DNA from: Basidiobolus meristosporus CBS 931.73
Lineage: Eukaryota; Fungi; Basidiobolomycota
Reading direction: 5' to 3'
Length of the DNA: 64,000 bases
Assembly (NCBI GenBank): GCA_002104905.1
Contig: MCFE01000411.1
Coordinates: 1 to 64,000 of the forward strand
Positions within the stretch are counted from its first letter, which is position 1. Every line of letters begins with the position of its first letter. A program made the translations under genes and the position numbers. Under the pieces are notes generated by a model. The model was given only the letters and a program-made list of their open reading frames with translations, was not told the DNA's origin and ran no database searches. Positions 5,261 to 63,463 of the stretch are shown in pieces.

Positions 5261-5333
5261 TAACCAAGCCAGGGGTCGAACCTGGGACCTTCCGCTTAGG
5301 AGGCGGACGCTCTATCCACTGAGCTACGAGGCC
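5261..5333 (-). tRNA. tRNA-Arg(CCT), 73 nt, intronless, with a poorly paired acceptor stem
   Basis: D stem GCTC/GAGC, anticodon arm TCCGC-CTCCTAA-GCGGA, T arm CCAGG-TTCGACC-CCTGG, A20 and A73, followed by TTCTTTT (Pol III terminator-like). Confidence 0.85.
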
Positions 5334-21600: not shown

Positions 21601-22889
21601 GAAAACCTTCTTAATTGGAATTTCTTGATATTGGGTAAAAAGTTCTTTTTGGTGTGTAAAGTGTTGAGATGCTCCAGAGTCTATATGCCACATTTGAGAA
21701 TCCTTGCTTGTGGTCATATTTAGTGAATAGTCTATCTTCAGTTGTTGCAGCATATCCATATTCAGGCTTCTTTTGCTGATTATCTTTCTTTTTGAGACAC
21801 CGGACTGATGTGTGTCCTTTCCTTTTGCAGTAGTTACAAAACAGGTTGCTGTTGCCTTTGTAGGGTCTTAGGTACCTCCTTTGTTGGTTATCATTGCTTC
21901 TTAAAGCATTTTCTTCTTCCTTCTTATTGGCACTTGATTTTCTTGATTCTTCATCAAGGAGCCTTCCATATACATAATTTAAGGTCAAATCTTCAGTTCT
22001 GGACACTAGTGCTGATACAAGGCCCTGAAACCTGTCTGTAAAGCTATTCAGGATGGTTACTATCACATCCTCATCAGCAGTTTGTATGCCCACAGATTCC
22101 ATCTCATCTACCAGCAGGGTAATTCTGTTAAATAAATTTTTCATTTCTTCTCCTGGCAGAATCTTTGTAGTAAAGAATTTTGTCTCAGATACATTTGCTT
22201 AACAGCTGAGCATGACTGGTAGGTGTCTTCTAATGCCTTCCAGGCATTCTTTGTTGTTTTTGCTCTTGAGCATTGAATTAGCAATTTGTCCTTGACATTA
22301 AGGCAAATGTGGTTAAAGGCACTTTGTTCTTTCTTCTGGTACTTTAAGGCTTCCTATCCCACGTTTTTAGGAGGGCATTCTTCTCCCATGACAATATCCC
22401 AAAGGCCTCTTTCTTGTAGCAGCATCTTCATCTTCACCTTCCACACTTGGTACTTAAATCCATCCAACTTTTCGGCAGAGGGAAAATTCCAGTAACAGCA
22501 GTAGTAGACATTGCAGAGAGTGACAGCTCAGGGTTAATAACCTGTTGTAAGAGTCTTGGAGATATTGGAAGTGATTGGGAGAACAAGTAGATTATGTGAT
22601 TTCACTTAATGATTTATTGAATGCAAAGTAGTATTTATACTTTTACCTGGTCTTGCCATAAAAGATACTTAGAATAGGTTAAGAAAGGTCTCAAGAACAT
22701 GTGTGCAAGGTTTGGGGCTGTTTGGACAAGTTTGAGAATTTTCATGTTCTGGGTACCTGGTGTTTTGGTGAAAATATTCAAAGTAAATCCTAACAAGGAA
22801 TTTTGGTCAGTATTTTCTAGGATTTGAAGGTGATGATCTAAGTGACTAAGTTGGGTGAATATTTAGGTGGAAATACAAATTTATACAAC
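18605..22889 (-). mobile_element. Ty1/copia retrotransposon copy 1 (two LTRs, decayed gag-pol, ~390-bp internal deletion)
   Basis: LTRs 18605-18953 and 22543-22889 (last base displaced to 23626). CCHC knuckle CNYCKRKGH; IDSGASQH protease; HSDVCGP integrase; YKARLVAKGYSQ RT; GYSDADWG RNase H; PPT GCTGAGTGGGAG. Confidence 0.95.
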
Positions 22890-23622
22890 AGACTTGTTCC
22901 ATTGGATAGTGCCACATTGAGCCATGAGTAGCAAATAATGCCATAGTGTGCCAGGGAGACCAAGTGAGCCTGTACTTGGCCACAGAGTATGAAACATAGC
23001 TCTCCATCTTCATGCAAAGCAGCCCCTGTGTTTGACCCATTGTACTGAAGAAAATCCATTTTTTGACCTTTTTTTTGGATCAATGTTGTGCGGGATGTGG
23101 ATGAGCACAGAAGGACTGAAGACATGAATCTGGTACTCAATACCCATGGCACTCTGAATCTAGCTTCTGTGGCTTGTATCAAGTCACAAAAATGCATGGC
23201 ACTATCTTGTTCCACTGGTACTATCAGGCACTGTATTTAAATATTAGCCCTAAAGTAAGACCTATATAAAGCACTTATAGTGCCAGATAGTACCAGTGGA
23301 CCAAGATAGTGCCATACATTTTTGTGACATGATACAAGCCATAGGAGCTAGATTCAGAGTGCCATGGGTATTGAGTACCAGATGCATGTCTTCAGTCCTT
23401 CTGTGCTCTTTCACATCCTGCACAACATTGATCCAGAAAAAAAGGTCAAAAAATGGATTTTCTCCAGCACAATGGGTGAAACACAAGGGGTGCTTTGCAT
23501 GAAAATAAAGAATAATGCTTCACACTCTGTGGCCAATTTTAGGTCTGCTATGCCTTTCTGGCACTCAATGGCACTATTTGGCACTCATGGCTCAATGTGG
23601 CACTATCCAACAGAACAAGTCT
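22890..23622. mobile_element. Foldback/MITE-like palindromic DNA element, copy 1 (733 bp)
   Basis: AGACTTGTTC...GAACAAGTCT; arms 22890-23235 and 23276-23622; 40-bp spacer; TSD AAC/AAC. Confidence 0.9.
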
Positions 23623-27733: not shown

Positions 27734-30700
27734 TGTTGTAAAAGTTAGTAGCTCTATCTAAGTACTCACTTAAGCTAGTCACTTAGAGCATTACCTACAA
27801 ATCTTGTAGAGAACTGACTAAATTCCTTGTTGGGACCAACTTTAAGAATTTTCATGATTTGTGTATCTGGCATTTTAGTGAAAATTTTCTAAGTTGTGCA
27901 AACAGTCCCAAGCTTTGCACACATGCTCCTGAGGCCTTCCTTAGCCTATTCAATATGGTTGTTAGGCCTAGACTATGTAAAAGTATAAACACTACTTTTC
28001 ATTCAATATATATTATTAAGTGAAAATCAAATAATCATCTTATTCTCCCAATCGCTTCCAATATTTCCAAGACTCTTACAACAGGTTATGAGCCCCAAGC
28101 TGTCACTCTCTGCAATGTCTACCAGTGGTATTACTGGAATATTTCCCCCTGTAGAAAAGTTGGATGGATCTAACTACCATGTGTTGAAGGTGAAGATGAA
28201 GATGCCGCTAGAAGAAAGAGGCCTTCGGGATATTGTCATTGGAGAAGAATGTCCTCATAAAAGTATGGGGGAGGAAGCTTTAAAGTACCACAAGAAAAAG
28301 CAAAGTGCCTTTAACTGCATTTGCCTTAGTGTCAATAACAAATTGCTAATTCAATGCTCAAGAGCAAAAACAGCAAAGAATGCCTGTAAGGCATTAAAAG
28401 ACACCTACCAATCATGTTCAGCTGCTAAGAAATGTATCTTGGACAAAATTTTTCTACTGCAAAGATGCTGCCAGGAGAAGAAATGAGAAATTTATTTTAC
28501 AGATTACCCTTCTGGTGGATGAGATGGAAGCTGTGGGCATACCAGCTATTGAGGAGGAAGTAATAGTTACCATCCTGAATAGCCAGACAGACATGTTTCA
28601 GGGCCTTGTATCCGCCTTGGAGTCCAGAACTGAAGATTTGACCTTAAGTTACATATATGGAAGAGTCCTTGATGAAAAATTCAGAAAATCTGTTGTAAGA
28701 GTCTTGGAGATATTGGAAGTGATTTGGAGAACAAGTAGATTATGTGGTTTTCACTTAATGATTTATTGAATGCAAAGTAGTATTTATACTTTTACCAGGT
28801 CTTGGCATTACAAACACGTAGAATAGGTTAAGGAAGGTCCCAAGAACATGTGTGCAAAGTTTGGGGCTGTTTGGACAACTTTGAGAATTTTCATGTTCTG
28901 GGTACCTGGTATTTTGGTGAAAATATTCTAAGTAAATCCCAACAAGGAATTTGGTCAGTATTCTCTAGGATTTGAAGGTGATGATCCAAGTGACTAAGTT
29001 AGGTGAATATTTAGGTGGAAATACAAGTTTTTACAACACTCCCACTCAGCTAAATGTTCATACTGACTAGTCCTAATTTTGACCTAAGATATTCAAACTT
29101 GTCTCTAGCTAATGGTTTGGTAAATATGTCTGCAATCAATTCATCTGTATGACAGTAAACTAAGCTAACTAAGTTATTCTCTATAGCTTCTTGTATGAAA
29201 TGATGTCTAATATCTATGTGCTTGGTTCTAGCATGAAAAGTTGGATTTCTACCTAATTGTATACATCCTTGATTATCTTGAAATAAAGTAATAGGCGTTT
29301 TTCAACATAGGCCTAAATCTGTAAAGAGCTTTCTTAACCACATTGCTTCTTTTGTAGCTTCACTGGCTGCTATATACTCTGCCTCTGTAGTGGAAAGTGC
29401 TACGGTTGGTTGCTTTCTTGAATTCCATGAAATGGCTCCTTTACAGTAAAGAAAGGTGTATCCTGTGCTGGATCTTCTGTCTTCTAAATTTCGTCCCCAA
29501 TCAGCACCAGAGTATCCTACAAGATCCTGTTCTGAATCCTTATTAGTGTATCTTAAGCAGATATCAGCAGTTCCTTTTAGGTATCTAAAAATCTGCTTAA
29601 CTGCTGCAATATGATCAGATCCATAATTCTGATTATGTTGGCTGACAACTCCCACTGAATATGAGATATCTGGACGTGTTCCAAGCATTATATACATCAG
29701 ACTGCCGACCATAGATTGATAAGGAAAGTCAGGGCTTTCAGATGGCACCAAGCTCTCTTGATTTGGTTGAGTTTTGACCAAGTTAAGGTTTGTCTCCATT
29801 GGGGTAGCTGCTGGTTTACAGTCTTCCATTTTGTACTTCTTTAGTATATCTTAAATATACTTGGATTGGCTTAGGGTAATAGTCTGGGTACTTCTGTCTA
29901 TGGAGAACTTAATCCCTAAGTAGTAACTAAGTTCTCCTAAATCAGACATCTTGAACTCCTTAGATAGGCTGGATTTAGTCTCTTCCAATGTTTCTAGGTT
30001 ATTGGCGGCTATAATAAGATCATCCACATATAGAGCTAATAGAACTGGATTTGCTCTATCTGGCTTATAATATATACTATAGTCAGCATTACTTCTTTTG
30101 AAACTCAAGGATTCCAAATAAGAATCTATCTTGCAATTCCAGGCTCTTGGTGATTGTTTGAGACCATATAGTGACTTTTTAAGCTTGCAGACCAAATGGG
30201 CGTTATCTTGGTCAACAAACCCATCAGGCTGGTCCATATACACGTCCTCATCAAGTTCTCCATTCAAAAATGCAGTTTTTACATCCATTTGATGAATAAA
30301 AAACTTATATTTGGCTGCAATAGCCAATATTAATCTGATGGAATTAAACTTGGCTACCGGTGCAAAGGTCTCAGTATAGTCAAGTCCTTTTGTTTGAGAG
30401 TATCCTTTGGCCACAAGTCTTGCTTTGTATCTTTCAATTGTACCATCAGCCTTGTATTTTGTCTTGAAGACCCATCTGCATCCAATTGATTTTCGGTTGA
30501 TTGGTAATTTGACTAAGTCCCAAGTTCAATTATCCATCAGTGCCTGATATTCCTCAGACATTGCAGATCTCCAAAACTTTGTCTGAGGGCTATTAAGGGC
30601 CTCTTTTACAGTCTGGGGTTCATCAATATGGACTGAATAGGCATAGGCTAAGTTTGTACCCTCATTGATATAGTAATTTGGGCTATTTCTTGTCCGATTG

Positions 30701-33652
30701 GATCTCCGGGCATTTGATACTGGAATGATCACTTCTGGGATATTCCTGGGCACTGATTCTGGCTGAACCACGGTTATAGAGTCCTCTGGAGTGAAGAAAT
30801 TTTCATTGTTTTGCTCTGATTCAATCCTGACAATTGGTGGACTTGAGATCAAATTTTCGTCATCATCTGATGTCATTTTTTGTGAAAATTTTAAATTTTC
30901 ATCAAACAACACATCCCTGGACTTGATCAGCTTCTTTGCCTCTGTATTGTAGAGTCTGTATGCCTTACTCTCATTGCAGTAGCCCATAAATATGCATTTC
31001 TCACTTTTTGGCTCAAATTTTCACTGATTTTGGCCGGTTTTTTGGCATATGCTGTACACCCAAATATTCTTAGATGTTCTGCACTTGGTCTGTATCCATA
31101 CCATGCCTCAAATGGAGTAGAATCACGAAGTATTCTGTTATAACTCTTATTTTCAAGGTATACAGCACTGGCAACTGATTCCGCCCAAAAATCATAGGAT
31201 AATTTTTGATCATAGATCTTGCCATATCAATTATTGATCTGTTAGCTTGTTTTGCTACTCCATTTTGCTGTGGGGAGTATGGTACAGTAATCTCTTGCTT
31301 TATCCCATGCATTTTGCAGAAGTGGATGAAGAGTTTTGAGGTATATTCTCCACCATTGTCAGAGCATATTTTCTTGATTTTTTCACCAGTTTCTCTCTCC
31401 ACCATGGCTTTAAACTCCCGGAGCTTAGACAGAGCTTCTTCCTTTCTCTCCATGAAGTAGACCCATGTGTATCTTGTATAATCTTCAATAAAAGTGATTA
31501 AATACTTCATCCCGCCTAAGGATAAATTTTGCATAGGTCCACACAGATCTGAGTGAATTAGATCTAATTTTTTCTTAGTTTTGATTAGCCCAGAGCTCTT
31601 GAACGGTTGTCTGGCTTGTTTCCCATATATGCAGGCTTTTCAGTGCTCCAAATTAGCTGGGGGATCAATTTTCACTCCAGAAATTAGCTGATCTTTGGTC
31701 ATTTTGCGCAAATAATCAAAATTGATGTGTCCAAATCTCCTGTGCCAAAGCATTGGTGTTTCTTCATTTAAGTTACTTAAATTGGCTTCCAGATATGATG
31801 GAATATAAGTCAACTTGTATAGATTCTGATCTCTGATGCCCAAAGCAATATGGGCACCATTTTGATCAGTGATCCTGCATCCAGAATTGTCAAAACTGAA
31901 ACCGAGTCCTTCTGCTGTGGCCTTGCTTACAGAGAGTAGGTTCTTGGCTATTTCTGGCACATAGAGTACTTTTTTAAAGGTCATTGTATGGCTGCCTTCA
32001 CTGCTTCTAAGGTTTACTTGGATAGTTCCTTCTCCCACTGCATCAAGTGTTCTATTGTCACATATGAAAACCTTCTTAATTGGAATTTCTTGATATTTGG
32101 TAAGAAGTTCTTTTTGGTTTGTAAAGTGTTGAGAAGCTCCAGAGTCAATATACCACGTCTGAGAATCCTTGTTTGTGGTCATATTTAGTGCAGATATGAA
32201 TAGTCTATCTTCAGTTGTTACAGTATTTCCATATTCAGGCTTCTTTTGCTGTTAATCTCTCTTTTTGAAACACCGGTCTGATGTGTGTCCTTTCCTCTTG
32301 CAGTAGTTGCAAAATAGGTTGCTGTTGCCTTTGTAGGGTCTTGGGTACCTCCTTAGTTGGTTATCATTGCTTATTAATGCATTTTCTTCTTCCTTCTTAT
32401 TGGTACTTGATTTTCTTAATTCTTCATCCAGGAGCCTTCCATGTACGTAATTTAAGGTCATATCTTCAGTTCTGGACTCTAGGGCTGATACAAGGCCCTG
32501 AAACTTGTCTTTCAGGCTATTCAGGATGGTAACTATCACCTCCTCATCAGTAGTTGGTACACCCACAGATTCCATCTCATCTACCAGCAGGGTAATTCTG
32601 TTAATTAGATTTTTCATTTCTTCTCCTGGCAGCATCTTTGTAGTAAAGAATTTTTGTCTCAGATACATTTTCTTGGCAGCTGAACATGACTGGTAGGTGT
32701 ATTCCAATGCTTTCCAGGCATTTTTTGCCTTTTTGCTCTTGAGCATTGAATTAGCAATTTGTCCTTGACATTAAGGCAAATGCAGTTAAAGGCACTTTGT
32801 TCTTTCTTCTGGTACTTTAAGGCTTCCTCTCCCACATTTTTAGGAGGGCATTCTTCTCCCATGACAATATCCCAACGGCCTCTTTCTTGTAGCAGCATCT
32901 TCATCTCACCTTCCACACTTGGTAGTTAGATCCATCCAACTTTTCAGCAGAGGGAAAAATTCCAGTAATAGCAGTAGTAGACATTGCAGAGAGTGACAGC
33001 TCGGGGCTCATAACCTGTTGTAAGAGTCTTGGAGATATCGGAAGTGATTTGGAGAACAAGTAGATTATGTGGTTTTCACTTAATGATTTATTGAATGCAA
33101 AGTAGTATTTATACTTTTACCAGGTCTTGGCATTACAAACACGTAGAATAGGTTAAGGAAGGTCCCAAGAACATGTGTGCAAAGTTTGGGGCTGTTTGGA
33201 CAACTTTGAGAATTTTCATGTTCTGGGTACCTGGTATTTAGGTGAAAATATTCTAAGTAAATCCCAACAAGGAATTTGGTCAGTATTCTCTAGGATTTGA
33301 AGGTGATGATCCAAGTGACTAAGTTAGGTGAATATTTAGGTGGAAATACAAATTTTTACACCAAAATCAAGCGTCAATAAGAAGGAAGAAGAAAATGCTT
33401 TAATAAGCAATGATAACTAATAAAGAGATACCCTTGACCTTTTAAAGGCAATTGCAACCTGTTTTGCAACTACTGCAAATGAAATGGACACACATCTCAC
33501 CAGGGCCTGAAAAAGAGAGATAGCCAGCAGAGAAGCCAGAATATAGAAATGCTGAAACAACTGATGATAAACTATTCATATCTGCACTAAATATAACCAC
33601 AAAAAATGATTCTCAGATGTGGTAACTTGACTCTGGGGCATCTCAACACTTT
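27734..33652 (+). mobile_element. Copia copy 3 (host): 5' LTR 27734-28083, PBS, gag split by copy 4, truncated at 33652
   Basis: PBS GGTTATGAGCCC 28084-28095; gag reads ..EKFRK|SSVNKKEEENAL across the insertion. Confidence 0.9.
28691..33363 (-). mobile_element. Copia copy 4, full length (4673 bp), youngest LTR pair, gag-pol disrupted
   Basis: LTRs 28691-29038 and 33016-33363 (348 bp, 4 differences by hand), TSD AAATC/AAATC, all domains present including WHRRFGHINF and LYVDDL; frameshifts near 32915 and 32770 and stops. Confidence 0.96.
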
Positions 33653-34755: not shown

Positions 34756-36330
34756 CTGAGCTCTTGACATTGTAGCCTTGTCTGTCAGTGGGACCTCAAC
34801 TATGTCAACAATGGAGGATGCAGAGGCTGTGGTAGACAAATTGCCTTTCTCTGCAAACTCATCTACCTTGGTGGAGTGTAGCTCAACAGCCTGAGCTTCC
34901 AACTCTGGTGGAAATAGCTGTTTTCTTGCTGGTAATTCTTCTTGGCCATGATGAGATTCAGCCTGTTCCAGGATTACAGCATTCATTGGCAATAGCTGCA
35001 GTTTTTTTTGTATGCTTCCCTGTCTCAGGCTTGAGTAGACACTTTTCCCTTTACCTTCTCCTTTATCACTGCCAGGTCTTTCACTTCTACTTTTTCTGAG
35101 TGCTTCTTGTAAGGAATTATATTTTCTCTTTGCTAAATTCTGCTCAAACGCAGCTGTTTTGTCCTACTTGTCCCTTGCTGGCACTGTCCTTGCAACTTGA
35201 CATTTCTTTACCACTTGTTTTGAGCCCTCAGCTGTAGTTGTAATAGGCTCATGAGAAAGCCACTTGTCCCTTAATGGCACTCTTCCAGCTACCTGGCATC
35301 TCCTTGATGCTTGCTTGGAGCTTTTGGCCCTGCTTGTATAAGGCTCTTGAGGAAGCTGCTGGTTTTTAGCCATAGCACCCTTGTACTGCTGCCTTTGATA
35401 GTTTCTGCTAATCTTGAGATACTTTGTTAGCATACCAATACTGGCCCAAAATCTGTTTGCTTACTTGAATCCAGGATAATGCTCATGGAGCAAGTCAGCA
35501 GCTTTCTGCTGGGCCTTGAGTTCCTTATGATCCCATGGTATACTGGCCTTACGGTGTTGGCATGCTAGACTTCTAATGGCCTCTTGGATATTTGCCACCT
35601 CTTCATCACTGCAATCAACAGCTTCACATATGTTCAATGTCTTTTGATTTATAGGCTTTGGTATAAACACTACATTTTCTCCCTGCTATGTTGTGATAGA
35701 TTTTCTATAGGCTTTATGTTTGAGCAGTGTTGTTGTGCTTGAAAGACTGTACAGTGGTTGTCTGCTATTACAGTGCAAAATGGCACAATTCTTGGCTGTA
35801 GCATTGAGCTACTTGAGTTCCTTCTTTGCAGCAAAGATACTGCTTTCTCTACCTGGGATATAGATTGATCTATACCTTTTATCCACTCATCCTGTTTCTG
35901 AACTCTTTCTTGACTTCTCTGGGCCATTGCATCTATCCTATTAGCTACAGTGCCTGATTACCTCTTTAATGCTTTGGCATGAGCTGACAACAGACTTGCT
36001 AATATGAGTGGTGGCAATGTTATGACAGCCACTTAATGGTCTGCAACTGAAGGTACTGCTGTTGCTACATTCTCATCTGCCTCAGTACTGTGGCCAGCTT
36101 GCAGCTCTGCAGAGATTTTCAATTGACTGAGAGCCTGCAGTGTCTGCATTATTACAATCAATGGACACACTGTCCACAGGGCCTTCTTTGGTTGTAGCCC
36201 CACTTGTTGCACTGAATCTCAAAGCAAGCTTTTGTCTAACTGTTCTTCTGCTCCTATCAGTAGTGAGGTTTGGTTGGGAACCCAACAACTTTGTCTTATT
36301 TTTGGCCACATATATACAGAAGTGAGTCAA
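34755..36330 (-). pseudogene. CACTA-associated ORF2 of unknown function (decayed)
   Basis: ORF pieces 36082..36330, 35670..35927, 35461..35670 and 35164..35433 match pieces at 54124..54660 and 53763..54137 (e.g. QDEWIKG..QSISQVEKAVS, DLLHEHYP.FK). Confidence 0.65.
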
Positions 36331-36533
36331 ACTAAAGGAGAGATGGTGTTACATAAACATGTGTAAGTGGTGCCACAACATTATTTATGATGCTTACTAT
36401 GACAGGTCATTGTTAAATCTTACATTTATGTAGGTGCAATGACTTAAATAGAAGAATGCCTTGGATTCACCTGAGTATTGACAAAAAAATGATCTAAAAG
36501 TGTTATGTTGCTGAGTGTCAAACTGTTTGCCAT

Positions 36534-39500
36534 ATGGAAAAGACTACTTTGATGCAACGCCATAAGAGAAGAGAAAAAAGTCCATGTGGTAATTGTAGCC
36601 AGCCTCTCAGTCATGAAAAACATATACAGTATAGGAAGTATTACAGGGATCTTGGCCAGTGTTTTGCCGCTCAAGTCATATTTGACCACTTGCCAGTGAC
36701 TACTGCACCAACATCATCTTGCCAGCCACTTGATACCTCTATAATGACATCTGGCCATACTTGTCACCATGTGCAAACTGAGTCAGGTGAGTTTGTGACA
36801 CCTCTAGGCTTGCCCCAGCTTTCTGAATATTGCATACAGAGTGACAGACCTGAAGCAGCAGGCTCATGGATAGATTGTGAGCTTTTCTCCCTAACAACAG
36901 TATCCGGCATTAGCTTGACAAAATCCCATTATGCAATGAGATAATACAAATGGAAAAAAATGCTAAGGATGATTTATGGAGTCAAGCAAGGACAGTATTC
37001 ATCTACTGGTGAACAATGTGATGTTGTGGCTAGAGAAGTAGCTCATTTCCACTAATATCAGTAGTAGGGGCTTTGGGGTTCCACTACTACTTCTTGCCAA
37101 AATCATCCGGGGATGCAACTTGCCATGTACATGGTATGAATCAACAACCATCATGTGGCTGGCAACATATGACCCAGAGACTGTTGTGATACCTGTTGTA
37201 AAGATTTGTATTTCCACCTGAATATTCACTTAATTTAGTCACTTGAATCATTACCTTCAAATCCTAGAGAATACTGACCAAATTCCTTGTCAGGATTTAC
37301 TTAGAATATTTTCACCAAAATACCAGGTACCCAGAACATGAAAATTCTCAAGGTTGTCCAAACAGCTCCAATCTTTGCAAGCATCTTTTTGGGACCTTCC
37401 TAGACCTATTCTATGTGTTTGTAATGCCAAGACCGTGTCAAAGTATAAATACTACTTTTACATTCAATAAATCATTAAGTGAAAACTCATAATCTACTTA
37501 AGATATGCAAGAGGGAGCCTTAAAGTACCAGAAGAAAGAACAAAGTGCCTTTAACTGCATTTGCCTTAATGTTAAAGACAAATTGCTAATTCAATGCTCA
37601 AGAGCAAAAATGGCAAAGAAAGCCTGGAAGGCATTAGAAGACACCTACCAGTCATGTTCAGCTGCTAAGAAAATGTATCTGAGACAAAAATGTTTTACTA
37701 CAAAGATGTAGCCAGGAGAAGAAATGAAAAATCTAATTCACAGAATTACCCTGCTGGTGGATGAAACAGAATCTGTGGGTGTACCAGCTACTAATGCAGA
37801 TGTGATGGTTACCATCCTGAATAGCCTGACAGACAAGTTTCAGGGCCTTATATCAGCCCTAGGGTCCAGAACTGAAGATTTAACCTTAATTTATGTATTT
37901 GGAAGGCTCCTGGATAAAGAATTAAGAAAATCAAGCACCAAAAAGAAGGAAGAAGAAAATGCTTTAATAAGCAATGTTAACCAACAAAGGAGGTACCCAA
38001 GACCCTACAAAGATAGCAGCAACCTGTTTTGCAACTACTGCAAAGGTAAGGACACACATCAGACCAGTGTCTCAAAAAGAGAGATAGTCAGCTGAAAAAG
38101 CCTTAATATTGAAATGCTGCAACAACTGAAGATAAAATATTCATATCTGCACTAAATATGACCACAAACAAGGATTCTCAGACGTGGTATATTGACTCTG
38201 GAGCATATCAACACTTTACACACCAAAAGAACTTTTTACCCAATACCAAGAAATTCCAATTAAGAAGGTTTTCTGGGTGACAATAGAACACTTGATGCAG
38301 TGGGAGAAGGAACTATCCAAGTAAATCTTCAAACAGTGAAGGAAGCCATACACTGACTTTTAAAGAAGTACTCTATGTACCAGAAATAGCCAAGAACCTA
38401 ATATCTTTAAGCAAGGCCACTGGAGAAGGACTTAATTTCAGCTTTGATAATTCTGGATGCAAGATCACTGATCAAAATGGTGCCCATACTGCTATGGGTA
38501 TCAGAGATCAGAGTCTATATAAGTTAGCTTATATTCCATCATATTTGGAAGCCAATATTAGTAACTTGAATGAAGAAACACCAATGCTTTGGCACAGAAG
38601 ATTTGGACACATCAATTTTGATTATTAGCGCAAAAAGAACAAAGATCAGCTAATTTCTGGAGTAAATTTGATCCCCCAGCTAATTTGGTGCACTGTGAAG
38701 CCTGCATATATGGGAAACAAGCTGGACAACTGTTCAAGAGCTCTGGGCTAATCAAAACTAAGAAAAAATTAGATCTAGTTCACTCAGATCCGTGTGGACC
38801 AATGGAAAAATTATCCTAAGGTGGGATGAAGTATTTAATCACTTTTATTGATGATTATACAAGATACACGTGGGTCTACTTCATGGAGAGAAAGGAAGAA
38901 GCTCTGTCTAATTTGAGGGAGCTCAAAGCCATGGTGGAGAGAGAAACTGGTGAAAAAATCAAGTAAATATGCTGTGACAATGGTGGACAATATACCTCAA
39001 AACTCTTCATCCACTTCTGCAAAATTCATGGGATAAAGCAAGAGACTATTGTACCATACTCCTCACAGCAAAATGGAGTAGCAGAATGTGCTAACAGATC
39101 AATAATTGATATGGCAAGATCTGTGATCCATGATCAAGAATTTTCCTATGATTTTTGGGTGGAATTGGTTGCCACTGCTGTATATCTTGAAAATAAGAGT
39201 TATAACAGAATACTTTGTGATTCTACTCCATGTGAAGCACAGTATAGATACAGACCAAGTGCAGAACATCTAAGAGTATTTGGGTGTACAGCATATGCCA
39301 AGAAACTGCCCAGAAATCAGTCAAAATTTAAACCAAAAAGTGTGAAATGCATATTTTTGGGCTACTGCAATGAGAGTAAGGCATACAGACTCTACAATAC
39401 CAAAGCTAAGAAGCTAATCAAGTCCAGGGACGTATTGTTTGATGAAAGTTTAAATTTTCACAAAAAATGACATCAGATGATGACAAAAATTGTATCTCAA

Positions 39501-45009: not shown

Positions 45010-46690
45010 ATAGGTTCCTGAGGAAGGCACAGGCTTAAATGACTGCCAGGTCCTTGTCTGCTACTTCAGCTGAGTGCTCTTGAGTTGAACTGCACTTTCC
45101 CTGATAAAGTCTGCACTGGTGCATCTGTTTCTGCCTGCTTGAACATTTCAAGTGTGGCTTAGCTACCTGGCACTTCTTTTGTGCATGCTGAGAGCTTTCA
45201 GCCCTGCCTTGATGGGGTCTTGAAGATCTTGCTGGTTTTTGGGAGTGGCCCCCTTGTGCTTCTATCTATGATAGTCTATTCCATTCTCATATGATTTCTT
45301 TACATTCCAATGATGCCCAAAGCTTATTTGCATGTTTGAACTCAGGATAATGCTCATGAAGCATATAAGACTTGTTCTGTTGGATAGTGCCACATTGAGC
45401 CATGGGTGCCAAATAGTGCCATTGAGTGCCAGAAAGGCATAGCAGACCTAAAATTGGCCACAGAGAGTGAAGCATTACTCTTTATTTTCATGCAAAGCAC
45501 CCCTTGTGTTTCACCCATTGTGCTGGAGAAAATCCATTTTTTGACCTTTTTTTCTGGATCAATGTTGTACAGGATGTGAAAGAGCACAGAAGGACTGAAG
45601 ACATGCATCTGGTACTGAATACCCATGGCACTCTGAATCTAGCTCCTATGGCTTGTATCATGTCACAAAAATGTATGGCACTATCTTGGTCCACTGGTAC
45701 TATCTGGCACTATAAGTGCTTTATATAGGTCTTACTTTAGGGCTAATATTTAAATATAGTGCCTGATAGTATCAGTGGAACAAGATAGTGCCATGCATTT
45801 TTGTGACTTGATACAAGCCACAGAAGCTAGATTCAGAGTGCCATGGGTATTCAGTACCAGATGCATGTCTTCAGTCCTTCTGTGCTCTTTCACATCCTGT
45901 ACAACATTGATCCAGAAAAAAAGGTCAAAAAATGGATTTTCTCCAGCACAATGGGTGAAACACAAGGGGTGCTTTGCATGAAAATAAAGAGTAATGCTTC
46001 ACTCTCTGTGGCCAATTTTAGGTCTGCTATGCCTTTCTGGCACTCAATGGCACTATTTGGCACCCATGGCTCAATGTGGCACTATCCAATGGAACAAGTC
46101 TATAAAGTACATTCTGCTTGGCTTTGAGCTCCAGATAGTTCCATGGTATGATGGCCTCAATATGATGGCATCTCTAGACTTTGTGCAGCCACTTGAATAT
46201 TGATTGGCTCCTCATTATTGTGCTCAACTGCTTCATAGATCTTTGATTTTGGCTAATTTTTAGACTTTGGTACATGTATTGCAGTCACCCCCTCTCATTT
46301 TGTGATAGGCTCTTCTGTGAGCTGTGAATCTGGAAGTGTTGTTGTGGTTCAGTGACTGAGTGGTGTACCTCTGTTGCTATTTCAGAGGATGGATCATTCT
46401 TATTCTGCAACATTGAGCTTTTTGAATTCCGTTGTTGCAGCCAGAATATTACATTTTCCACCTGGAGTAGCAGTTACTCCATATATAATATCCACTCTGC
46501 CTGTTACTGAGTTGTCTCCTAATTTCTCTAGCTCATTGCATCTATCCAATTACCCATTGTACCTAATGATCTCATTAATGCCTTGATATAAGCCAACAAC
46601 ATATTTGATAATACTGGTGGTGGTGATGTTATGACAGTCAGTTGCATGTTTTACACATGATTTACTACATTAGATACATTCTCATGTGCT
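45010..46690 (-). pseudogene. Heavily decayed CACTA ORF2 copy, host of foldback copy 2
   Basis: Flanks rejoin as GGATAATGCTCATGAAGCATATAAAGTACATTCTGC, matching the empty site near 53935. Confidence 0.6.
45368..46101. mobile_element. Foldback palindromic element, copy 2 (734 bp, opposite orientation to copy 1)
   Basis: AGACTTGTTC...GAACAAGTCT, TSD ATA/ATA; left arm differs from the copy-1 right arm at ~5 sites. Confidence 0.92.
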
Positions 46691-47199
46691 TGAGCATTAA
46701 TGTCTTACAGTGGTGTAGTGGTATGAAAGAGACATTCAGCAACCAATGTACTCATTCCTATATTTTCTACTTCCTAGCTTTTCTGCTACCTATATTTTAG
46801 ATTTATTATTTAACTTGAGTAATCAGTAATATTCCATAAGCTGGCTGACTACCACTCATGCTGATTATAATTCAAAACCCAGTTGTAACTCTATGTGGGA
46901 CTACTATATGTCAATGCTTCTATATTAAGCAAGTACCAAAGCTAGTATCTGTCACACATGACTAAGCCATGCCATCATCCCTACCATTTCCACTCCATGT
47001 ATGGCATTTTTATGTTACACTGATTCCAAAATACTGATGCCCAATAGTTAGATGTGTTTTGCATTTTAGAAGCTGTTGGGTCCTACTATTCATGCACCCA
47101 GTTGAGTAGTGCACCTTGTTCTAGTCTTGATAAGATGTCAGCAACCATATCATTTTTCCTAGCACAGTAGACAATCTTTGAGTCAAATTGCTGATTGTT

Positions 47200-49404: not shown

Positions 49405-50137
49405 ATACTTGTTCCATTGGATAGTGCCACATTGCGCCATGAGTGCCAAATGATGCCATAGTGTGCCAGGCTGAGCCTAAGTGAACCCATATTTGGTCAC
49501 AGAGTGTGACACATAGTTCTTCTTCTTCATGCAAAGCCACCCTGGTGTTTCACCCATTATGCTGGAGAAAATCCATCTTTTGACCTTTTTTTTGGATCAA
49601 AGTTGTGCAGGATGTGTAAAAGCTCTACAGGATTGAAGACATGCATCTGGTGCTCAATACCCATGGCACTGTGAATCTAGCTCCTGTGGCTTGTATCATG
49701 TCACAAAAATGAATGGCACTATCTTGGTCCACTGATACAATCTGGCTTTATACTTAAATATCAGCTCTGAAGTAAAACCTTTACAAAGCACTTATAGTGC
49801 CAGATAGTACCAGTGGAACAAGATAGTGCCAAGCATTTTTGAGACATAATACAAGCAACTGGAGCTAGGTTCAGAGTGCCATGGGTTTTGCATACCAGAT
49901 GCATGTCTTCAGTTCTTCCCTGCTCTTACACAACATGCACAATGTTGATGCAAAAATAGGTTAAATAATTGATTTTCTCCAGCAAAATGGGTGAAACACA
50001 GGGGTTGCTTTGTACAAAGATGAAGAGCTATATTTGAGACTCTATGGCCAGGTTTTGGTCTGCTATTCCTCTCTGGCACACAATGGCACTATTTATCACT
50101 CACAGCTCAAAGTGACATTCTCCAACAGAACAAGTCT
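49405..50137. mobile_element. Foldback palindromic element, copy 3 (733 bp, older)
   Basis: ATACTTGTTC...GAACAAGTCT, TSD ATT/ATT; empty site matches GAGATTGTGTAA near 43788. Confidence 0.88.
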
Positions 50138-53364: not shown

Positions 53365-54720
53365 TGCTTCCCTGTCTCTGGCCTGGGTGGACTTTTTCCC
53401 CTTTACCTTTTCCTTCATCACTGCCAGGTCTTTCACAGCTACTTTTTTGGAGTGTCTCTTTTATTGAACTACACTTTCTCCTACATAAAAGTTGCATTGA
53501 TGCATCTGTTGTGGCCTGCTTGTCCCTTGCTGGAGCTCTGCAGGCAACCTGTTGCTTCTTTCTTGCTTGTTTCATACTCTAAGCCCATACTGTCAAGGGC
53601 TCCTGAGGTAGCTGCTTGATTTTATTACTGCCAGGTCCTTCACTGCTACTGTTTCAAAGCACTTCTTGAGTAGAACTACTCTTATTCTGGGTAAATGTTG
53701 TGCTGGTGCATCTGTGTCTGCCTGCTTTTCCCTTATGGCACTCTTCTAGCTACTGGATTCCTCTATGACACTTTTTGGAGCTTTTGGCCCTGCTTGTGTA
53801 GGCTCTTGAGGAAGCTGCTGGTTTTTAGCCATTGCACCCTTGTTCTTGTGCCTTTGATAGTTTCTGCTACTCTTGAGCTACTTTTTAGCATACCAATGCT
53901 GGCCCAAGATCTGTTTGCTTGTTTGAATAAAGGATAATGCTCATGGAGCAAGTCAAGTACATTCTGCTTGGCCTTGAGTCTCTGATGGTCTTGCAGTGTG
54001 CTGGGCTTAAAGTGATGGCATGCCAGACTTCCAAAGGCCTCTTGAATATAAGCTAAGGCTCTGGTACTGGTACAAACACTATATTCTCTCCCTCCCATGC
54101 TGCAATAGGTTTTTCTGTGGGCTTCATCTTTGAGCACTGTTGTTGTGCTTTAAAACTGTATGGTGCTCCTCTACTGTTACATTGGGAAATGGCTCAATTC
54201 TTGGGTGCAACTTTGAGCTACTAGAGTTCCTTCTTTGCAGCCAAGATACTGCTTTTTCAACCTGGGATATTGATTGTGTTACACCTTTTATCCACTCATC
54301 CTGTTTCTTAACTATTTCCTGATTGCTCTGGGCCATTGCATCTATTCTATCAGCCACTGCACCTAGTTGTTTCATTAATGCCTTGGTACAAACTGACAGC
54401 ATACTTGCTAATATAGGTGGTGGTGATGTCATGACGGTCACTTGCTGGTCTTCAACTGAAAGTACCGCTTTTGCCACATTCTCATCTGCCTCAGCAATAT
54501 GGTCAGCTTGCAGCTCCACAGAGATTCCCAATTTCCTACTTGACTGAGAGCCTGAGGAGTCAACATTATTCCTTTCAATGAGCACATTGTCCACAGGGCC
54601 TTTTTTGGTTGTAGCCCTGCCTGTTGCACTGAATCTTAAAGCAAGCTGTTGTCCAACCATTCTTGTGCTGCTGTCAGCAGCTGGGTTTAGCTGAGAACCA
54701 GATAACTTGAATTATATTTT
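53365..54720 (-). pseudogene. CACTA ORF2, best-preserved copy
   Basis: ORFs 54124..54660 (178 aa) and 53763..54137. Confidence 0.65.
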
Positions 54721-54950
54721 AGCGGCCTGAATATGGAAGTGAGTCAAACCCAAAGGGAAATAGTGCTATGTACATGTGTGTATGTGGTGCCACAACTCTA
54801 TTTACAGTGACTACTATGGCAGGGCATCATTAAATTTTACATTCATGTAGGTGCAATGTCTCAAATACAAGACTGTCTTAAATTCCCATGAGTATTGACA
54901 TGAAGGTGATATGATAGCATTACATTGTTAAGTGTCAAGCAGTTTGCCCC

Positions 54951-57040
54951 ATGGACAATGCTACTTTGACTCTATGCTGTAAGAGAAGAGAAAAAAGAAC
55001 ATGTGGCAATTGTAGCAAGCCTCCCAGCCATGGCACTCACAGACAGCATTGGAGGTATTGCAAGGATCACAGCCATTGTTTTGCCACATAAGTCATATGC
55101 GACCATTCACCAATCACTACTGTACAAACAACATTGTGCTGGCCACATGATACTTCTATAATGGCATCTGACTATACTTGTAACCTTGCACAAACTGAGT
55201 TAGCAGAATTTATGATGCCTTTAGGCTGACCTCAGCTATCTGAATATGGCAAGCAGAGAGATAGCTTTGAAGAAGTAGGCACACTGATTGATTGTGAGCC
55301 TATCTTCCCTCAAAACAGTACCCTGCATGAGCCTGGCAAAATCCCTTTAATGCAATGAGAAAACACCCATGGAAAAAATGCCAAGGATACTTTATGAAGT
55401 GAAGTGAGTACAGTGATAGATCTGCTGGTGAAAGATGTAATGTTGTGGCTGGAGAAGTGGGAAATTTCCACTAATATCTGTAATGGGGGCTTTGAGAATC
55501 TACTACCACTTACTGCCAAAATCATCCCAGGATGCAAATTACCATGCACATGGTTTAATGGAAGAACATCATGCAGCTGGCAACATATGACCCTGAGATC
55601 ATCCTAATACCAGCATGTATTAACAGTTACATGGAGTTCACATCTGAAAATGCTACCATAGTAAGGTGTCCAACTTGTCAGGAATCCACCACTATTGGGG
55701 GAAAGCATTGTTCACACTCCAGGTATATTCCAGCAATACTTTATGTAAAGGAGCTCATGCAGTCCCACAAATATTTTGAAGCTATAAAGTACCACACTCA
55801 ATATTAATCAGGAGCAAGCATATCAGATATATGAGATGGCAAACATTACATACAGCCAAGAAGCATGGGATACTTTGAAGGCTTGTTTGACCATGCCTTT
55901 GCCTAGGCACTTGATGGATTCCCATTAAACAAGTTCCCTCCCAGCAAATTCTGCTGGCCACTGATTCTCATCAACTTGAATCTGCTGCCTATCTTGCAGT
56001 ATCAGTATAGAAATCTGATGGTAGTCTTACTGGTATCTGAGCCTAAGTCAACAACCAACCTAGATTGCTATCTGTATCCATTCCTTGATGAACCTTGCAT
56101 GCTTTCCAGTGGGATAACAGTAAATGGCCATCATGTAAAAGCATATATTATTTTCTGCATTGGAGATACCCCAGCCATCAGCAAGATAGCCAGCTTTTCT
56201 GTGCATAATATGTGGTATTGCTGTCAAATGTGTGAGACCCAAGTGACTTAATCCATAACGCACACAATATCATTACCCAAACACCAACATCAAGAGCTTC
56301 AAATTTCCACAGAGAGAATGTGCAGAAGTCAGCATGCAATTGCAGCAAAGTTGGCAAGCTATATGCCGTTGGCTGGAATCTTGAACTAAATAGAAACTGG
56401 ATATACTTAAGACAGTTAGTATCTGTTAGAGCAAAAGCTTCCTACTGAGAGCAATGCATTTGCTTTTCATCAGTATCCCTATACTGATGACTAAGTTGTA
56501 CATGGGACATTTCAAGCTAAATGGGCCCTTTGAGATACTGGAGAAATTTGAAAGAAGTGGCAGGATATTACCAAGTATCAGCTACCCTAAGTACTTCTCA
56601 TGGGCTCCAATCAACATCCATACGCATATGCAACAATAGAAGTGCAATGACTGGATGAACTGGATATGTATATATTTAAGTGGCCTTCTGAAGCAATTTC
56701 TACCAAGAGTACATTGAAAGCATTGGGATTCATATGTGGATATTGTAGGAATATTTTTCCAGAAGCAGATCACCAGTGGCAGCTTCACACATCTACACTT
56801 TTGAGCCAAGAGTTTGTGACAGGACTAGAGCAGCTGTACAACAAACATAAAGCTGAGCACGTAGGTCTCTGCTGCTACTGTATTTATTTGCTACTCCATT
56901 GTGCTTTGTGTGATGAGAATATTGGACCTTACTTCACCTTGTGGAGTTTTCTATGGAGCAGATGTGTAGGGAGATAGGAAGGCAAGTCAGGTTGCAGGTA
57001 CTACCATATCCTAATCTCATCAAGAATATTACCTTTGAGC
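54951..57040 (+). pseudogene. CACTA Tnp2-like transposase, uninterrupted but decayed
   Basis: MDNATLTLCCKRREKRTCGNC; ATYDPEIILIPACINSY..RCPTCQE; YDGKHY; SEPKSTTNLDCYLYPFLDE..CIGDTPAISK..HNMWYCCQMC; MHLLFISIP. Confidence 0.8.
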
Positions 57041-57439: not shown

Positions 57440-59341
57440 CCACAGAGCACCATACAGTCTTTGAAGCACAACAACAGTGCCCAATGATAAAGTTCACAGA
57501 AAAAACTATCACAGCATGAGAGGGAAAGACTGTGATGTTTATACCCAAGCCTAAAATTTCAAAGACAATGAAGATCTGTGAAGCCATTGAGTGCAGTGAT
57601 GAACAGGGGGCTAATATATAAGAGGCTGTTAGAAGTCTAGCACAGCATCATCTTAAGGCATACCATGGGACCACCAGGAACTCAATTCCAGGCAGAATAC
57701 ACTTGAGCTTTTCCATAAGCATTATCCTAGATTCAAGCAAGCAAACAGATCTGGGGCCAGGATGGAGTGCTCAGAGAGTATCTCAAGAATAGCAGAAACT
57801 ATGAAAGGTAGAAAAACAAGGGTGCTGTGGCTAAAAAGCAGCAGCTTCCTCAATAGCTTATCACAAGAAGGGCTGTAAGCTGCAAACAAGCAGCAAAGAA
57901 ACACCAGGTAGCCAGAAGAGTGCCAGTATGGGACAGGCATGCAGAAGCAGATGTATAGGACATCATTATTGAGGACAGAACATAGTTCATTACAAGAAGA
58001 GCTCAGTTACAGTACCAGTGAAAAATATGACACTGATAATAACCCCCAACTTTCTTGGGAGCCCTTCAAAAGCAGGGCTGGGAGTTCCAAACAAGCAGCA
58101 AACAAATATCAGGTTGTCAGGTGAGTGCTGGCAAGGAACAAGCAAGCAATAACATATGCATCAGTGCAGTATTCATCAAGGAGTAAACAAAGTACAACAT
58201 AAGAAGCACTTGGTCACTGTAGCAGTGAAGGACCTGAAGTGATACAACCCATGGGTTTTTCAAAAGCCTGTGACAAGCAAGGCTGATAGTTTCAAGCCAG
58301 CAACTAAGAGACATCCAGTTTACAGGGGAGTGCTGGCAAGAGACAAAAATGGGTGCATCAGTGCATCAGTCAACAAGGAGAAAACAAATATAATACATGA
58401 AGCACTCAGTCAAAGTAGTGGTGAAAGACCTGGCAGTGATTAAGGTAGCGGTAAAGAGAAGAAGGTCTACCAAGGCCAGAGACAGGGAAGTGTCAGAAAA
58501 ATACTGCAGTTCTCACCAATTAATGCCATCAATCCAGAACAGACTGAATCCCATCATAGCCAAGAAGAATTACCAGCAAGAAAACAGCTGCTTTCTCAAT
58601 GGTTGGAAGTGCAGCCAGTTGAGCAACACTCCAGTGAGGTGGATGAGTTTGGAGAGAAAAGAATTTTGTCTACCACTTCCTGCATATCTTCCATTGTTGA
58701 CAGAGTAGGGATCCAAATGACAGACAAGCAACAATATCAAGAACTCAAAAGACTATCACAATGCCTACAGTAGAATTTTAGAACATCAATAAGCACACCA
58801 AGAGGTTGCAGCACTTCTTCAAGAGTAGAGCTCACAAAAACACACATAACTATTGCAGGGATTTATTGCCAAGACTGGCAGATAAGGTGCTAGGCCTTGC
58901 TGTACTTGCTTGTTGAGTGTGGAGTTTGGCTTAATGTTGGTGTTCAGTATAGGGACTTGCATGGGTCAATTCAATTGGCAGTCGAGGTACAACTGAAGTT
59001 TCAACGGAAATAAACAATTTGTATGCATGAGAAGTAAGAGAAACAATTGAGTCAGGAAGTAAGGAGTGTTAAAAAGAGGCAATAGCCAATCAATTCATAC
59101 AAATGTAGGAGGTAATAGAGTGTCCGGGATCTGAAAGTGGGCAAATAGCAGGGAACCAATCAAAAGCCACATATACATTGTTGTGATGAAAAATATTGCC
59201 AAGTTTTTTGTGAAATCTGAGGTGCAATTATTTTTCATTGGTCTCTAGACAGTGTCCTGACAGGATCAGTACCTCTTAGTCATGGGACTTTAACTTTTTG
59301 ATGGCCTTTTGATGGAATCATCACAATAATTTTTCATACCA
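57440..59341 (+). mobile_element. CACTA ORF2 3' half plus ORF2-side terminus
   Basis: Homologous to 34755-35700 and 24137-25056 (reverse complement); ends ACAATAATTTTTCATACC. Confidence 0.65.
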
Positions 59342-62802: not shown

Positions 62803-63463
62803 ATGGTCAGCTTGTGGCTCCACAGAGGTTCTCAATTTCCTACTTGACTGAGAGCCTAAAGAGTCCGCATTATTACCCTCAATGAGCACACTGTCCACAA
62901 GGCATTTTTTGGATGTAGCCCTGCTTGTTGCACTGAATGTCATAGCAAGCTGTTGTCTGACCGTTCTTCTGTTGCCACAAGTAGTGAGGTTTGGTTGAGG
63001 GCCGCACAACTTTGCTTTATTTTTTGGTGACATATATATGGAAGTGAGTCAAATCAAATGGGAAAAAGTGTTACATATATGTTTGTATGTGGTGCCACAA
63101 CTTTAATTATAATGCTTAATATGGCAGGTCATCATTAAATCTTACATTCATGTGGGTGCAATGTTGCAAATACAAGACTGTCTTAAGTTCACCTGAGTAT
63201 TGACCAAAAAGTGATATATTAGCGTTAAGTTGTGGAAGGTCAAACTGTTTGCCCCATGGACAAGACTACTGTGACTCAACTCCATAAGAGAAGAGAAAAA
63301 AGACCATGTGGCTATTGTGGCAAGTCTCTCAAACATGAAGCATGCAGACAGCAAAGGAGGTATTACAAGGACCATGGCTAGTGTTTTGCCACTCAAGTCA
63401 TATTTGACCATTCATTGGTCACTACTGTACCAACATTATCTTGCAGGCCAGTTGATACTTCTA
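62803..63463. mobile_element. CACTA central fragment (ORF2 start on -, transposase start on +)
   Basis: Colinear with 36090-36740 and 54500-55160. Confidence 0.7.

Follow-up and report, generated by a model that had tools for sequence, protein, structure and literature searches.

Apparent non-reciprocal copying of one arm onto the other in a short foldback transposon

The homogenisation of inverted repeats has been described as a striking characteristic, with numerous examples among both long and short repeats (PMC8604942), and the homogenisation of arms either by conversion or by template switching is well documented (PMC8604942, PMC3004938, 10.1101/800185, PMC8600007). On sex chromosomes, palindromes convert from arm to arm; their arms are more than 10 kb long, more than 99% identical and gene-bearing, and the conversion is continual (10.1101/800185; PMC8600007). 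In yeast and bacteria, an imperfect quasipalindrome can be corrected to a perfect one in a single step, with one arm acting as the template, and short homology is sufficient at the points where the template is switched (PMC8604942; PMC7202029); in the yeast cases, the arms measure 7-16 bp and only a few bases are changed. A transposon provides a further example: in a Wolbachia insertion sequence, the inverted ends of one element were made identical by intra-element recombination (PMC3004938).

Here we describe a case from a 64-kb stretch of eukaryotic DNA (the window; all positions refer to this whole stretch), in which one of three copies of a foldback element, copy 2, has arms that match perfectly over 265 nt. 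An earlier note on this DNA had compared the locus with palindrome homogenisation on sex chromosomes, and the comparison is apt in that the event is of the same kind: non-reciprocal copying within one inverted repeat on the same chromosome, by which the arms are kept or made identical (10.1101/800185; PMC8600007). However, the arms of copy 2 are only 347 bp long and non-coding, they were 13% different beforehand, and a single tract of 213-265 bp was affected. Copy 2 also resembles the corrected quasipalindromes in the one-step change from imperfect to perfect with one arm as the template, but the change covered 34 sites and an indel over more than 200 bp, so that the event may work like a template switch without being a typical member of that class (213-265 bp compared with 7-16 bp). 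The Wolbachia case is bacterial and concerns short repeats, in which one marker was converted and the interior was inverted (PMC3004938), whereas copy 2 shows no inversion and a long tract. Copy 2 adds a further instance to a known process and introduces no new principle. Its interest lies in the divergence of 13% that was crossed and in its tidiness: it is a clean natural example in a short, strongly diverged inverted repeat, and three copies are enough to reveal a single tract, its donor, its direction, the intervals containing its ends and its relative timing.

A BLAST search of the window with the element returned three copies of 733-734 bp. Copy 1 (22890-23622), which has its A arm on the left and its B arm on the right and is flanked by a target duplication of AAC, was used as the reference for unconverted arms. 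Copy 2 (45368-46101, 734 bp) is inverted relative to the other two and lies between duplications of ATA at 45365-45367 and 46102-46104. Copy 3 (49405-50137), with an A-like arm on the left, a B-like arm on the right and a duplication of ATT, served as the outgroup. Copies 1 and 2 are 93.9% identical in reverse orientation, and copy 3 is old, having diverged by about 17-20% from both. The ends of the element start with AGACTTG, and both ends of copy 2 read AGACTTGTTC; a 24-nt terminus starting with AGACTTGTTC occurs six times in the window, exclusively where one of the three copies begins or ends. The two arms of copy 2 (45368-45714 and 45755-46101, 347 nt each) are 97% complementary and are separated by an asymmetric spacer of 40 nt (45715-45754), which has the same layout of an A side and a B side as the spacers of copies 1 and 3.

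When the element and one ATA were removed from the flanks of copy 2, the joined flanks could be aligned over the junction without a gap to three paralogues of the host repeat, one empty site being located at 53880-54010 on the plus strand and others at about 35420-35560 and 57640-57780 (minus strand). Similarly, the flanks of copy 3 minus the element and one duplication gave gap-free alignments to two paralogues, the empty paralogues carrying a single ATT. Since empty sites were found for copies 2 and 3, the copies represent independent insertions of a mobile element. The longest open reading frames of the element encode 68-125 aa and are mirrored between the strands; they gave no Pfam match, ten of the element's reading frames had no exact entry in the protein collection, and a word-based search of that collection with the 90-aa frame of the B arm gave no candidate relative. 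With neither a Pfam match nor relatives, a coding role for the mirrored frames was ruled out. Other searches were equally negative: the element matched no Rfam family at the gathering score, a 24-nt pattern shared by all six arms had no match in metagenome contigs, a 22-nt subterminal sequence had none in prokaryote genome contigs, and no transposase gene sharing the foldback ends was found in the 64-kb window. From the inverted arms, the 3-bp duplications, the empty sites and the lack of coding capacity, we classify the element as a non-autonomous, non-coding foldback, that is, a MITE-like cut-and-paste DNA transposon.

Among described transposons, Galileo of Drosophila is similar in being a structurally dynamic cut-and-paste element that consists mostly of long inverted arms with internal repeats, but it is an element of the P superfamily of which coding copies exist, whereas the foldback is 734 bp long, non-coding and flanked by 3-bp target duplications (PMC3573991). 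The Pangu group of the PHIS (PIF/Harbinger-ISL2EU-Spy) superfamily generates a 3-bp target duplication of the form 5'-ANT-3' and has ends that start with AG or GG (PMC4482050). The foldback shares the length of the duplication and, in AGACTTG, the AG start; ATT fits the ANT pattern and ATA and AAC do not, three sites being too few for a judgement.

The stretches 45380-45644 and 45825-46089 are exact reverse complements over 265 nt with no mismatch, and no exact repeat in the 64 kb, whether direct or inverted, is longer, the second longest measuring 200 bp. The arms of copy 2 differ only at 45378-79 in the tip and, in the inner 70 bp, at 45645, 45648, 45661, 45674, 45689, 45697 and 45705. The six arms of the three copies were aligned, each being read from tip to loop, with the A and B types defined on copy 1. 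The A and B arms of copy 1 showed 35 differences in the 265 columns of the tract (34 substitutions and one indel) and differed in 9 of the 84 stem columns outside it; the arms of copy 3 showed 64 differences over the same 265 columns. Copy 3 agreed with the A/B assignment at the tip dinucleotide, in the halves of the spacer and at the sites in the tract (eight for, two against), and so the two arm types must be older than all three copies.

Viewed in this alignment, the left arm of copy 2 (45368-45714, plus strand) was of B type at every diagnostic site. The right arm, read on the minus strand, was a mosaic. Its tip (46090-46101) was of A type, the TG at 46090-91 corresponding to CA on the arm strand; it was then of B type at 34 out of 34 diagnostic sites (columns 43-243), where it matched the left arm; and it returned to A type from column 282 up to the loop, over an inner segment of 70 bp (45755-45824) that carries the A-type state at columns 282, 285, 298, 311, 326 and 342 (positions 45824, 45821, 45808, 45795, 45780 and 45764). 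For the 42 stem sites, of which 34 were called as B-type and 8 as A-type (column 349, which would be the 43rd, was excluded as private to copy 1), the probability that all of the B-type calls would be contiguous by chance is 9/C(42,8) = 7.6e-8. The mosaic is also visible in the reading frame 45775..45981, whose N-terminus is as in 22838..23215 and whose remainder is as in 45488..45694. The earlier note had reported the mismatch-free repeat, about 35 differences between the arms of copy 1 (by hand count), the mosaic right arm with A-type sequence at 46090-91 and in the inner 70 bp or so (e.g. 45821 and 45824), and the hybrid frame; each was reproduced here, and the hand count proved correct.

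The direction of transfer could be deduced from variants that are specific to copy 2. The B arms of copies 1 and 2 differ at exactly five positions (45405, 45466, 45478, 45569 and 45617), all of which fall within the tract, and all five variants are mirrored in the right arm of copy 2, at 46064, 46003, 45991, 45900 and 45852, respectively. Four of the five are derived, as the other base is present in each of the four arms that copies 1 and 3 provide. Because derived variants are mirrored, the copying from B to A must postdate the split from copy 1, a conclusion that holds whichever state was ancestral in the right arm. The donor was left unchanged, being of B type throughout and matching the B arm of copy 1 except at the five private variants. 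Taken together, the alignments indicate that the B arm was copied non-reciprocally onto the A arm in the copy 2 lineage, after at least four substitutions specific to copy 2 had accumulated. The recipient tract in the right arm (minus strand) extends at least over the 213 bp between the outermost mirrored markers (45852-46064, columns 254 and 40) and at most over 265 bp (45825-46089), with 45380-45644 on the plus strand as the corresponding donor stretch. In these respects, the five mirrored variants, a directional transfer and a tract of 213-265 bp, the analysis agrees with what the earlier note had proposed.

Two other origins of the mosaic could be discounted. Chance or parallel mutation was ruled out by the contiguity of the B-type calls in combination with the four mirrored derived variants. 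A reciprocal exchange by crossing over would have inverted the interior and left both arms as mosaics, rather than making them identical; the spacer and the inner arms of copy 2 keep their A/B arrangement, and hence no crossover took place.

The 2 x 265 bp involved have remained free of differences ever since the event, compared with four in 265 bp before it. Assuming a uniform rate, the event would be separated from the present by less than roughly half of the time that preceded it, although the numbers are small; if the two times were equal, the probability of this outcome would be (1/3)^4 = 0.012. Dating copy 2 by the divergence of its arms would be wrong, because 0 differences in 265 bp look young even though the arms had been 13% apart. 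Cases of this sort help to calibrate how far arm identity in foldbacks reflects youth and how far later copying. The intervals in which the tract must end (45825-45851 and 46065-46089) both lie within the two longest blocks of A/B identity, of 38 and 28 bp. By our own arithmetic, and judged post hoc, the chance of both ends falling in those blocks is about 0.02. This position of the ends fits a process that depends on short perfect homology both at its beginning and at its end.

We consider it likely that 213-265 nt of the element's own B arm were copied onto its A arm in the copy 2 lineage during the repair of a break or a fork; both the molecular route and the use of the element's own arm as donor are inferred. 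A break or a stalled fork in the right arm would leave a free 3' end, which could pair with its counterpart arm in the element, at a distance of 180-700 bp, inside one of the two longest identity blocks that A and B share. The end would then be extended along the B arm and would return to its own arm in the other identity block. The route would most likely be synthesis-dependent strand annealing or template switching, without a crossover. Two considerations count against such a repair event. A divergence of 13% is of a level that is normally held back by mismatch repair in ordinary homologous recombination in yeast. In addition, the arms involved in template switches in yeast, at 7-16 bp, are far below the length of the tract (PMC8604942).

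The copying need not have taken place where copy 2 now lies. It might have occurred in a source (master) copy, from which copy 2 inherited the mosaic on transposing, and the mosaic would then be a subfamily trait. The B arm of copy 2 has four or five private changes compared with none or one in that of copy 1, a hint that would fit a separate source lineage, but the lack of any substitution in 530 bp after the event, when four had accumulated in 265 bp beforehand, speaks for a later date, and we regard an origin in a source copy as possible but unlikely. The identity of the donor poses a similar question. Conversion between dispersed repeats is known, and a B arm in another, oppositely oriented copy of the family could in principle have supplied the tract; however, the tract is the same as the element's own left arm at 265 out of 265 positions, including the five variants that the only other available young B arm lacks, and the own arm is by far the nearest template, which makes an ectopic donor highly improbable. 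We give least credence to an artefact of assembly or polishing, in which reads from the B arm would have been placed in reverse on the A arm and would have overwritten its consensus. Palindromes are a known hazard for consensus calling, but the true arms would have differed at 35 of 265 positions, which is too many for misplacement by similarity. Furthermore, the tract forms a single clean block that gives way sharply to A-type sequence at either end, the opposite arm is untouched, and any read longer than about 1 kb would have been anchored in the flanks.

A different route to the same product, and the one suggested in the earlier note, is the correction of mismatches in a hairpin or cruciform, in which the arms would pair within one strand and one long patch would be refilled from the B arm. 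The arms are predicted to fold in full register (321-353 pairs), and a single long patch copied one way would suit excision from a nick. Against this, 35 mismatches in 265 bp (13%) make the stem a poor substrate, the choice of strand in a hairpin would be undefined, and the 70 bp next to the loop, which would be expected to pair first in a snap-back, are unconverted. For these reasons we think it improbable that the tract arose by hairpin correction. Hairpin correction, break repair, strand invasion and template switching would all yield the same product, so that the routes are inseparable by sequence, which expresses no preference for a hairpin. The earlier note had also held that the event restored a perfect substrate for dsRNA or cruciform formation. 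As a description this is accurate, since the predicted hairpin energy is -667 kcal/mol for copy 2 and -530 kcal/mol for copy 1, but it contains no pointer to a function. It would be of wider consequence if the foldbacks of this genome possessed a dedicated, structure-driven form of re-homogenisation, in which a hairpin or cruciform triggers the break and guides copying across the 13% divergence where ordinary recombination is blocked. Old copies would then keep perfect long hairpins, as sources of small RNAs or as substrates for transposition, while neighbouring repeats decay. We consider the existence of such a process very doubtful, and repair of a break or fork from the element's own arm remains our preferred explanation of copy 2.

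Each arm has an internal architecture of its own. The 9-mer ATAGTGCCA is present 18 times in the window, where 0.8 would be expected, and only inside the three copies (22906-23606, 45384-46085 and 49421-50092). Every arm has two occurrences at its outer end, 29 bp apart, and two beside the loop with equal spacing and in the opposite direction; these 9-mers may be putative protein-binding sites. The outer 60 nt of the B arm, with their AGAC start, can be aligned to its inner 60 nt in reverse complement, with a score of 11 compared with -10.2 +/- 3.7 for shuffled sequences. Judged by this internal symmetry, each arm has the appearance of a unit, about 365 bp long, with its own inverted ends, and the foldback may have originated as a head-to-head dimer. 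At positions 11-12 of the inverted ends, every one of the three copies has CA in its A arm and TG in its B arm (22900-22901/23611-23612; 45378-45379/46090-46091; 49415-49416/50126-50127), despite the divergence of copy 3 by 17-20%. The CA/TG pair is thus a conserved asymmetry between the ends, and the tract in copy 2 stops just inside this dinucleotide.

The repeat that hosts copy 2 belongs to an old, unclassified family, whose copies in the window (35287-36600, 45068-46700, 53664-55006, 57442-57912 on the minus strand, and 62803-63311) are about 68-81% identical to one another. A Pfam scan of the reading frames of this family gave nothing, the longest of them (54124-54660, 178 aa) being without a significant match.

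The first 18 kb of the window have a G+C content of about 50% and contain the long exons of EMC1-like and glucose-6-phosphate dehydrogenase genes, between which a tRNA-Arg (CCT) gene is located at 5261-5333 on the minus strand. Beyond 18 kb, the G+C content is about 38-40% and the DNA is crowded with nested, decayed Ty1/copia retrotransposons. Remnants of these are dense and present in both orientations at 18600-42000, with fragments of RVT_2, gag_pre-integrs and Retrotran_gag_2; this nest, which adjoins the genic block of 50% G+C ending at about 18 kb, includes inverted pairs of up to 876 nt with 88-93% identity. Two direct repeats inside the nested array, at 28715-29038 and 33040-33364, are 4325 bp apart and about 98% identical, and match exactly over stretches of 200 and 111 bp; they probably represent the LTR pair of a single young copia element.
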